Source: Diadema antillarum (taxonomy: Eukaryota). Taken from it: DNA of 64,000 bases. This document shows, one piece after another, positions 1,338-2,812 of the stretch. The position numbers and the translations under genes were made by a program. The notes under the pieces are model-generated. The model was not told the origin of the DNA, did not search any database, and worked only from the letters and a program-made list of their open reading frames with translations. Each line of letters begins with the position of its first letter. Within the stretch, counting starts at the first letter, position 1. The stretch spans positions 558,001 through 622,000 of the forward strand of contig NW_027271741.1 of NCBI RefSeq assembly GCF_040938485.1, read 5' to 3'.

Positions 1338-1373
1338 ATGCAGATTGTCGTACCTGAAACGCATACGGTATCG
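1338..1373 (+). CDS. Candidate first coding exon of the deaminase gene (MQIVVPETHTVS)
   Basis: ATG at 1338, 12 codons, then a consensus GTAAGT donor at 1374. The phase-0 donor matches the phase-0 acceptor at 1834/1835. Based on splice signals only. Confidence 0.5.
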
Positions 1374-1390
1374 GTAAGTGGGTATGGTAA

Positions 1391-1558
1391 GGGCCCCATT
1401 TCATAACAAGTTGATATGATAGCAACTCTTGCTGGAATGGCAATTGTCATGATTGTGGACAAGAATCCAGCCTCTTGACTGGCTGTTGCCAATGTGGCAA
1501 GTTAAATTGCCATTCCAGCAAAAGTTGCTAGCCTAATATATTTTATGAAATGGGGCCC
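1391..1558. mobile_element. MITE in the putative deaminase intron
   Basis: GGGCCCCATTTCATAA at 1391 and TTATGAAATGGGGCCC ending at 1558, with inner inverted arms (GCAACTCTTGCTGGAATGGCAAT / ATTGCCATTCCAGCAAAAGTTGC). Confidence 0.7.
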
Positions 1559-1834
1559 AGATAACATTTTTTGTTAGATACAACGAAGGGTGGCTTAAAA
1601 TAATTCATCACCCGAAATAAAATTGACATGATTTTTAAAGTAAATTTGTAATCATAAGCATGTATGCAAATGACTTTGGTAGATGGTATACTTTCAAAGA
1701 CCTATTAAAAGGTCTGTTGTTTTCAGATGGGGCTGTTTATTGCATCGTTGCAAAATGTTAAAACACAGTTGTTTAAAGATACTAGTTTTCTCTCTTCAAT
1801 TCTGCAATTATTATTCGCTCCTTTCTGTCTACAG

Positions 1835-2811
1835 CCCCACGAGTATCTGGATGACGATGACGCCGACTACTTGCGGCGAATGTACTTCGAATTCCGGAGG
1901 CATTTCGAAGACCGTAGACAGTTCGCGGTCCTTGGGCTGGATCGAGTAGGCAAATGGCCCCATAACGCAATAGCCGCACAATTTGTAGACGATCTTCCCG
2001 CCAGGATTAGCGGCTTGAGGAACATGATATGCGCCTGCACGTACGTACGCGACGGAAATAACTACTTGTGGCACGCCGAAGAGCAATTGCTGACGCGTTT
2101 GACGCATTGGTTTGAAGTCGATGGACTGTGGCAATGGCAACATGGAGACGGGTCAAAAAGTCAAAGTCACACCATCCACATCCTAACATACTTCTCTCCT
2201 TGCTGGAGATGTTGTGACAGAATCCGAGATCTTGCTTCCATCATTCGTAGGCTCGGACTTCACGAGACTGTTCGTGTCGTCATCGGCTTCATTGAACCGT
2301 ACGGTTCGAATAAGGAGGTGGACCGTTGCAAGGAGAGAATGGCTTGCATGGAGAGTGCGAACTTGCGGTTCGGCTACCTTCCGCCACTAGGCAACGACAG
2401 CTATAAGAAGATGGCTCTTTGTTATGAAGATCCCGAAAGGGGCTATACTGCCACCGGAACGAAGCAATCTTTTGTTCCATTATCGCATCGCTTGATTGTC
2501 CCTGGTCTGCCGTTGAGACATCGACCATTGCGAGAGTGCCCAAACCCACGCCAGATGGTCAGCGAGTACAGGCAAGAATTCCCTGAAGGTAACTCAAACT
2601 TCGGAAGTCCCACACGCCAAAGGAACTGTTTCCCTCGATCTGGTCGGTACTCACAAAGCAATCATGTTCAACGGTTTCCTGCAGGCATTCCGTCGTTACC
2701 CGGAGAGGAGACGTTCGTTGACGGTCCGGATGTGACATGTGAGCAAAATAATGACTGGCCATACTCTTTATTTTCCTGTCACCACACTTCTTCATATCCC
2801 AAAGAGCTTTA

Positions 2812-2812
<1 letters not shown>
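1835..2812 (+). CDS. Zinc-dependent cytidine-deaminase-fold protein, AID/APOBEC-like (main/terminal exon of ORF 1727-2812)
   Basis: HAEEQLL (His codon at 2072) and TYFSPCWRCC (PC-x2-C at 2198-2212) form the HxE-xn-PCxxC zinc-binding motif, followed by a VRVVIGFIEPY strand. The pyrimidine-rich acceptor CTTTCTGTCTACAG ends at 1834 in frame, so the ORF-track N-terminus is probably intronic. Confidence 0.8.

Follow-up and report, generated by a model that had tools for sequence, protein, structure and literature searches.

The stretch of DNA analysed here (hereafter the window) comprises 64,000 nucleotides (nt) of Diadema antillarum (assembly GCF_040938485.1, contig NW_027271741.1, positions 558,001 to 622,000 of the forward strand) without a single N, and it harbours a deaminase gene, the main coding exon of which spans positions 1835-2812 on the + strand. 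Based on sequence comparisons we assign this gene, which is strongly diverged, to the echinoderm AID-like deaminase (AIDL) branch of the AID/APOBEC deaminases; its catalytic domain is followed by a Pro/Ser/Arg-rich tail. The reading that we favour, and that we consider reasonably probable, is that of an intact gene whose product deaminates cytosine in single-stranded polynucleotides, the tail being a module for targeting or interaction. The features of the gene are given below; residue numbers refer to the second exon (residue 1 at nt 1835) unless stated otherwise.

1338-1373, + strand: candidate exon 1 (ATG plus 11 codons, donor TCG/GTAAGT, phase 0), from reading the sequence
1384-1386, + strand: alternative exon 1, consisting of the start codon alone (ATG/GTAAGG, phase 0), from a candidate scan
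1374-1834, + strand: putative intron, AT-rich, with a polypyrimidine tract and CAG (1832-1834) at its 3' end, from the sequence
1727-2812, + strand: open reading frame (ORF) in frame +2, TAA at 2810-2812
1835-2812, + strand: main coding exon, 325 codons (1835-2809) plus TAA, starting after the AG acceptor 1833-1834
1835-2434, + strand: deaminase domain, residues 1-200, delimited by hhalign, AlphaFold and Foldseek
2072-2080, + strand: HAE, residues 80-82, with the zinc ligand H80 and the catalytic glutamate E82, from a motif scan
2111-2167, + strand: extended helix-2/strand-3 loop, residues ~93-111, six residues longer than in the AIDL proteins of Strongylocentrotus purpuratus (SpAIDLs), from alignment A3; modelled with lower confidence
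2198-2212, + strand: PCWRC, residues 122-126, with the zinc ligands C123 and C126; a Ser precedes it, matching the SPC motif of AID/APOBEC
2435-2809, + strand: tail, residues 201-325 (125 aa), Pro/Ser/Arg-rich, delimited by composition, AlphaFold and shuffling

An intact frame with a conserved zinc site

The ORF is intact, and its 325 codons are far from what chance would produce. When the complete frame (1835-2809) was shuffled 20,000 times by mononucleotides, no shuffle was free of stop codons, and this was the case for only 58 of 20,000 shuffles of the tail alone (p ~0.003); the two other forward frames of the tail region contain 3 and 6 stops. The GC content rises from 0.36 in the putative intron to 0.51 in the ORF. 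Within the deaminase domain, it differs between the three codon positions (0.55, 0.41 and 0.59), a pattern that is absent from the tail.

The first-pass annotation had described a motif of the type HAE-x39-PC-x2-C, and we could indeed locate it as described: HAE occupies residues 80-82 and PCWRCC residues 122-127 (nt 2198-2215), and 39 residues lie between E82 and P122. Thus, the zinc site (H80, C123 and C126) and the proton-shuttle glutamate (E82) are all retained. The VIGFIEPY strand that had been reported to follow was found downstream of PCWRCC at residues 149-156. The last 120 residues contain 12.5% Pro, 10.8% Ser and 9.2% Arg, which agrees with the description of about 120 extra residues rich in these amino acids, and the reported absence of a signal peptide fits the N-terminus of the spliced protein, which is acidic and lacks a hydrophobic stretch. 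What has to be corrected is the label "E118A" of the suggested control mutation, which counts from an unspliced ATG at 1727; in the 337-aa model derived below, the glutamate in question is E94.

Placement among the AID/APOBEC deaminases

A word-indexed protein search with the ORF returned no match, and phmmer against the PDB gave only a chance match to MoaD. An exhaustive phmmer search of 1.84 billion cluster representatives revealed a single relative at E ≤ 0.001, namely P0001 (E 6.9e-4), a protein of 193 aa from a metagenome assembly in ENA, which shares 34% identity with the ORF over the catalytic core (pairwise BLASTP E 2e-10) and which itself barely reaches the cutoff of 25 for Pfam APOBEC_N (25.2 bits). 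Profiles seeded with P0001 recovered the S. purpuratus "AID-like deaminase 4a" and, with lengths of 110-196 aa, five other proteins that are either unnamed or from S. purpuratus. Altogether, the relatives found in the large databases are the SpAIDL proteins and two metagenome proteins, and none besides. We also looked up the exact sequence of the protein, in three possible versions, and those of two neighbouring ORFs; the collection contains none of them.

The relationship was most apparent with a SpAIDL-only profile (A4), which was built from the eight relatives and from which the ORF was excluded. With hhalign, the ORF matched this profile over residues 8-161 with a probability of 97.7% and an E-value of 2.4e-12. 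A search with hmmsearch among all six-frame fragments of the window retrieved the ORF at E 4.8e-14, and no fragment from the rest of the window scored better than E 0.7. When the window was compared with the S. purpuratus AIDL locus by tblastx, positions 2153-2302 alone matched (E 8.5e-10), and no synteny was detected beyond the catalytic core.

The family models point in the same direction. Seven of the eight Pfam matches listed for the ORF belong to the AID/APOBEC clan (APOBEC_N, SNAD4, NAD1, APOBEC4_like, APOBEC4, APOBEC1 and APOBEC2), the eighth being DUF1242 with 9 residues. APOBEC_N (PF08210) scored 18.2 bits with the whole ORF and 19.5 bits with the domain alone (cutoff 25), and SNAD4 and NAD1 reached 15.3 and 14.9 bits, respectively (cutoff 27). 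No match to dCMP_cyt_deam_1 (PF00383) was obtained in Pfam even at E-values up to 10, and no match of any kind in NCBIfam. In a comparison of the family profile with solved deaminases, APOBEC3G, APOBEC3H and AID came first, at E 0.0024-1.7, with ADAT2 behind them at 1.4. At the level of sequence, the evidence thus separates the AID/APOBEC branch from the other deaminases.

The AlphaFold model, which was based on the nine sequences of alignment A3, has a predicted template modelling (pTM) score of 0.68 and a mean predicted local distance difference test (pLDDT) value of 64.8, with values of 75-86 in the catalytic half (residues 110-180). It contains helix 7-24, strand 31-35, strand 67-69, helix 81-96, which begins with HAE, strand 112-120, helix 124-139, which begins with PCxxC, strand 146-154, helix 159-172 and strand 177-181, i.e. 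the predicted cytidine deaminase (CDA) fold with its elements in the expected order. The best 50 Foldseek neighbours in the PDB are all APOBEC3, APOBEC1, APOBEC2 or AID structures (E 1e-5 to 3e-4, template modelling score ~0.35-0.46), so that the comparison proposed with the first-pass annotation gave a CDA fold surrounded by APOBEC/AID proteins. VIA-align, which is independent of Foldseek, likewise placed APOBEC3H (Z 8.1) and AID (Z 8.0) at the top; the 43 PDB representatives with Z ≥ 5 are nearly all CDA-fold proteins, mostly deaminases. The modelled structure establishes the fold; taken alone, it does not tell the branches of the deaminases apart. Taken together, SpAIDL homology, the Pfam clan, the profile comparison with the PDB and the Foldseek neighbours of the model uphold the earlier designation as an AID/APOBEC-like zinc deaminase, and nothing groups the ORF with dCMP, tRNA or free-cytidine deaminases.

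The degree of divergence becomes evident from alignment A3, one row of which (P0008) is a fragment without the HAE region. The identity of the ORF to the SpAIDLs amounts to 23-26%, compared to 47-55% among the SpAIDLs themselves. Among the eight other rows covering the motif, seven read HAE and one, P0004, reads HSE, so that H and E are kept throughout; S121, P122, C123 and C126 are invariant, and so are W101, D105, H115, T118, L142 and Y156. With SpAIDL1-9 (e.g. SpAIDL4a, which is P0002, UniProt A0A2U8JQ23) the Diadema protein shares the HAE...SPCxxC core, the N-terminal helix and the first strand. The spacer between the two motifs was noted before as unusually long, and it does exceed that of the SpAIDLs, with 39 residues in the ORF and 33 in the seven complete relatives (P0001-P0007). 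The helix-2/strand-3 loop that is extended in the Diadema protein does not belong to the known substrate-contacting loops of APOBECs. The loop that joins strand 4 to helix 4 (loop 7) comprises about 3 residues in the ORF vs about 18 in the SpAIDLs, and 199 residues follow PCxxC, compared to 64-73 in the SpAIDLs, which are single-domain proteins of 184-196 aa. Such a reduction of loop 7, combined with the extension of the helix-2/strand-3 loop, suggests that the Diadema enzyme may differ from the SpAIDLs in its target preference.

In the long stretch between strands 1 and 2 (residues 38-78), the Diadema protein bears the conserved or semi-conserved residues H43, C66 and C68, where the SpAIDLs have H, H, C and C. 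This stretch, which was modelled with low confidence, could represent an extra metal-binding insert of the kind described by Krishnan et al. (2018, PMC5889660). Among the classical invertebrate AID/APOBEC-like deaminases (AADs), these authors distinguished a cnidarian/lophotrochozoan/echinoderm/tunicate clade and a lophotrochozoan-echinoderm metal-binding clade (PMC5889660). The Diadema protein resembles the AADs in being lineage-specific and fast-evolving and in its variation in loop length and extra Cys/His inserts; however, the loop 1/loop 7 insert that defines the metal-binding clade is not evident, because loop 7 is minimal in the Diadema protein.

The vertebrate AID, APOBEC1 and APOBEC3 proteins share with the Diadema protein the Ser-Pro-Cys zinc motif and a CDA fold in which strands 4 and 5 are connected by a helix. 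They differ from it by an identity of only 12-16% and by the spacer (39 residues vs 24-36 in the family motif, PMC5956068), and the Diadema model has a long strand 1-2 stretch and lacks helix 5 and helix 6 after strand 5. LaAIDL1 of Lingula anatina is another invertebrate AID/APOBEC-like protein from a lineage-specific family that exceeds a single domain, but its extra length is a second deaminase domain in tandem with the first, whereas that of the Diadema protein is a repeat-related module, predicted to be disordered, without similarity to deaminases. Among the secreted AADs (SNAD1-4), the members SNAD1, 2 and 4 possess a signal peptide, unlike the Diadema protein, which also stays below the SNAD4 cutoff.

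The enzymes that restrict retroviruses and diversify antibodies have, to our knowledge, no known pre-vertebrate relatives other than the AID/APOBEC-like deaminases of invertebrates, few of which have been described and fewer assayed. The echinoderm AIDL family was already described in 2018 and partly assayed, so that this kind of enzyme is not new in itself, and we found no SpAIDL paper later than 2018 in the literature. The Diadema gene leaves the picture established in 2018 unchanged. It is, however, a new and unusually diverged AIDL member, in which the spacer is lengthened, loop 7 is reduced to a minimum and a tail is fused to the domain; this tail is predicted to be disordered and has a paralogue of its own. 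The gene thereby extends the range of sequences known for echinoderm AIDLs. Since the curated Pfam models miss the gene and only one relative was retrieved among 1.84 billion representatives, standard annotation will overlook genes of this type. With its altered substrate loops and its tail, the Diadema deaminase is a natural variant that can be compared with SpAIDL1 and SpAIDL2 to ask what determines target choice.

Gene model and the C-terminal tail

The coding sequence probably begins with a tiny 5' exon ahead of position 1835. A scan of all upstream sequence identified just two ATG-to-strong-donor candidates that are in phase with the acceptor, 1338-1373 and 1384-1386. With the former, a protein of 12 + 325 = 337 aa would result, and this two-exon model is plausible. 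In A3, the strong acceptor (1834/1835) and the intron of the S. purpuratus AIDL gene are no more than one codon apart, which supports a short 5' coding exon. In S. purpuratus P0005, ATGG/GTATGT is followed by a 1.4-kb intron and CAG/CATCG, and residues 2-196 are encoded on one exon. With either candidate first exon, the Diadema gene would resemble the SpAIDL genes in having its intron close to the start codon and the remaining coding sequence on a single large exon. The intron phase differs, i.e. 0 in the Diadema gene vs 1 in the S. purpuratus AIDL gene, and the alternative exon 1384-1386 would resemble the S. purpuratus first exon, which consists of ATG and one base. By contrast, if translation started at the ATG at 1727 without splicing, the protein would gain 36 residues, including a hydrophobic stretch encoded by the pyrimidine tract of the intron; this extension is probably not real.

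The putative intron contains an inverted repeat resembling a miniature inverted-repeat transposable element (MITE), with arms at 1415-1445 and 1505-1535 that are 90% complementary (~1391-1558 by eye). A second MITE-like element with terminal inverted repeats lies upstream (~430-600). A (CA)n microsatellite directly follows the stop codon of the deaminase on its 3' side, and the first AATAAA is located at 3847, about 1 kb downstream of the stop.

The tail is hydrophilic and mildly basic (grand average of hydropathy -0.96, isoelectric point 8.5). It is predicted to be disordered, as AlphaFold, run on the tail alone with a two-sequence alignment, yielded a mean pLDDT of 47.6, a pTM of 0.15 and no regular structure. 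None of the AIDL relatives found carries the tail, and it showed no significant match to the SpAIDL profile. A homologous sequence was detected elsewhere in the window:

38950-39452, + strand: tail paralogue, an exon-like ORF following a polypyrimidine tract and AG (38948-38949), phase 1

The paralogous ORF (38925-39452, 175 codons) is located on the same strand as the deaminase at a distance of 36 kb, and tail and paralogue are collinear from the first to the last residue, with 38% identity (A6; BLASTP E 1e-5 and 0.005). It contains seven tandem units of 30 nt (10 aa, consensus ~NNFASPSFQR; family D9), against a single unit in the deaminase tail. Because it starts right after a polypyrimidine tract and AG, 38950-39452 looks like the terminal exon of another gene. 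The homology begins exactly at the end of the deaminase domain, and the paralogue is collinear throughout; therefore, on sequence grounds, the tail is a separate module that is present in two copies in the window and is fused to the catalytic domain without an intron.

Two other interpretations of these sequences were rejected. The ORF 38925-39452 is not a hidden second deaminase, given an hhalign probability of 0.1% and the lack of both HxE...PCxxC and a profile match; in fact, no HxE...PCxxC motif or profile match was found anywhere else in the window. Neither is the end of the tail, the GPDVT stretch, a displaced SpAIDL C-terminal helix, as had been suggested by a MAFFT alignment (A5): only one of six SpAIDLs beat the shuffles (2/2000), hhalign gave 2.4%, and the domain already has helix 4 and strand 5.

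Proposed function and genomic surroundings

According to the reading that we favour, H80, C123 and C126 would hold the zinc ion and E82 would shuttle the proton. By analogy with SpAIDL1 and SpAIDL2 and with the vertebrate enzymes, the product would bind single-stranded polynucleotides and hydrolytically deaminate cytosine to uracil, and, in gut or coelomocyte tissue, it may help to fend off viruses or mobile elements. The tail, which we regard as a separately evolving add-on because its second copy exists as an exon of its own 36 kb away, would more likely set the partner, the localisation or the nucleic-acid affinity than the chemistry.

Liu et al. (2018) reported nine SpAIDL loci in S. purpuratus and proteins of 193-194 aa with an APOBEC_N domain; their expression is inducible and peaks in the gut (PMC5956068). 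SpAIDL1 and SpAIDL2, two of the five proteins tested, were significant G/C mutators in E. coli. The activity of SpAIDL1 was almost gone in the quadruple mutant H86R, E88Q, C123A, C126A and only modestly lower in the double mutant H86R/E88Q (PMC5956068).

Several points weigh against our reading. The spacer of 39 residues is outside the range of x24-36 given for the family motif (PMC5956068), and every Pfam score of the ORF is below the curated cutoff. The confidence of the structural model is middling, with a pLDDT below 50 in residues 38-78, and VIA-align places ammeline, ADAT2/3, RibD, TadA, dCMP and guanine-type deaminases at Z 7.0-7.9, i.e. within about 1 of the APOBECs. As to the tail, the open frame is the one argument for its joint translation with the domain. 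Finally, SpAIDL3, SpAIDL4a and SpAIDL9 had no significant mutator activity, even though SpAIDL3 was above the control, and five of the nine S. purpuratus AIDL loci are pseudogenes broken by frameshifts (PMC5956068).

The Diadema gene might be an expressed AIDL paralogue with little or no deaminase activity, functioning as a non-catalytic binder or decoy, which we consider possible but rather unlikely. Besides the three SpAIDLs without significant activity, it would be in line with this that AADs lacking activity have arisen repeatedly, in a sea urchin among others (PMC5889660), as would the reduction of loop 7, a substrate loop, and the basic tail, which is predicted to be disordered and could itself bind nucleic acid. 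On the other hand, all four catalytic and zinc-binding residues and the SPC context are intact in the Diadema protein, and the lack of activity of these SpAIDLs in E. coli at 37 °C is possibly an artefact, as pointed out by the authors (PMC5956068).

It appears less likely still, and on the whole improbable, that the locus is a silent or decaying copy, i.e. a young pseudogene or an unexpressed duplicate in which the frame is still open. The turnover of AIDL genes is rapid, as illustrated by the frameshifts in S. purpuratus; moreover, the 5' exon of the Diadema gene is a candidate only, and an interspersed repeat begins 56 nt past the stop codon, with the first AATAAA about 1 kb away. Against this stand the 325 stop-free codons, which no shuffle reproduced, with their catalytic residues intact, the GC differences between the codon positions of the domain, and the tail, which has kept its frame open and shares both frame and end with its paralogue.

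A similarly low probability applies to a more far-reaching view of the tail itself, namely that it is a mobile, repeat-expandable targeting module and that sea urchins, by shuffling the exon of an interaction tail, redirect a mutator deaminase to other targets. In an alternative version, the whole unit of deaminase and tail would travel with a surrounding repeat-bounded element.

Downstream of the gene, the following elements are found:

2868-3300 (+), ~4470-4890 (-) and ~5390-5720 (-): interspersed repeat (~400 nt, three copies) bounded by long poly-G/poly-C tracts
15050-18738, - strand: two abutting long ORFs of 974 and 263 aa, the upstream one with the C-terminal half of a SET domain (PF00856, 25 bits)
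20985-37400, both orientations: dense array of shuffled repeat modules with the palindrome GAGGACAGTCCTC (D5-D8, D18-D20; pairs I1-I25)

In our view it is very unlikely that a large mobile element carries the deaminase as cargo along with the SET/recombinase-like gene at 15050-18738(-), in which case the deaminase would serve the element rather than the host. The window is dense in repeats; the first copy of the interspersed element lies close behind the stop codon and is followed by the two inverted copies, this element shares a AATAGAGGAC-type motif with the array at 21-37 kb, and the long ORF with the SET domain is located at a distance of 12 kb. However, no repeat pair of at least 40 nt, such as long terminal repeats, brackets the deaminase gene within positions 1-40000, and the AIDL genes of S. 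purpuratus form an ordinary tandem cluster: the locus L001 (AAGJ06000015.1, 9510116-9532125) comprises three AIDL genes (196, 196 and 188 aa) in tandem on one strand within 22 kb, compared to one copy in the Diadema window.

A housekeeping deaminase acting on free nucleotides or tRNA (dCMP deaminase, CDA, ADAT2 or TadA type) is highly unlikely, for although the HxE...PCxxC motif and the fold are common to these families and ADAT2/3, TadA and dCMP deaminase reach Z 7.0-7.8 in VIA-align, less than about 1 below the APOBECs, the family models matched are those of the AID/APOBEC clan and not dCMP_cyt_deam_1, the sequence relatives are AIDLs only, the best 50 Foldseek neighbours are all APOBEC/AID, and such enzymes are highly conserved, yet a single relative was found at E ≤ 0.001.

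The AATAGAGGAC-type motif mentioned above is situated at the end of the ~400-nt interspersed repeat and resembles modules of the 21-37 kb array. At 15050-18738(-), about ten tandem repeats of 117 nt encode an acidic unit of 39 residues (D1-D4), and the C-terminal part, which has no Pfam match, presumably resembles a Crypton-type tyrosine recombinase. The right part of the window contains three further coding features:

52905-55901, + strand: full-length ORF of a non-long-terminal-repeat retrotransposon with endonuclease and reverse transcriptase
58322-58792, + strand: second ORF, the N-terminus of which resembles the endonuclease region of 52905-55901 by eye
60592-63801, + strand: single-exon leucine-rich repeat (LRR) protein of 1069 aa with a signal-peptide-like start, a hydrophobic end and no TIR domain

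On the ENA contig that encodes the AIDL protein P0006, two further ORFs of ~190 aa and a gene combining TIR and LRR (Toll-like) are present within 10 kb. The location of AIDL genes near LRR or Toll-like genes may reflect an immune-gene neighbourhood, or it may be due to chance, given the abundance of such genes in sea urchins.

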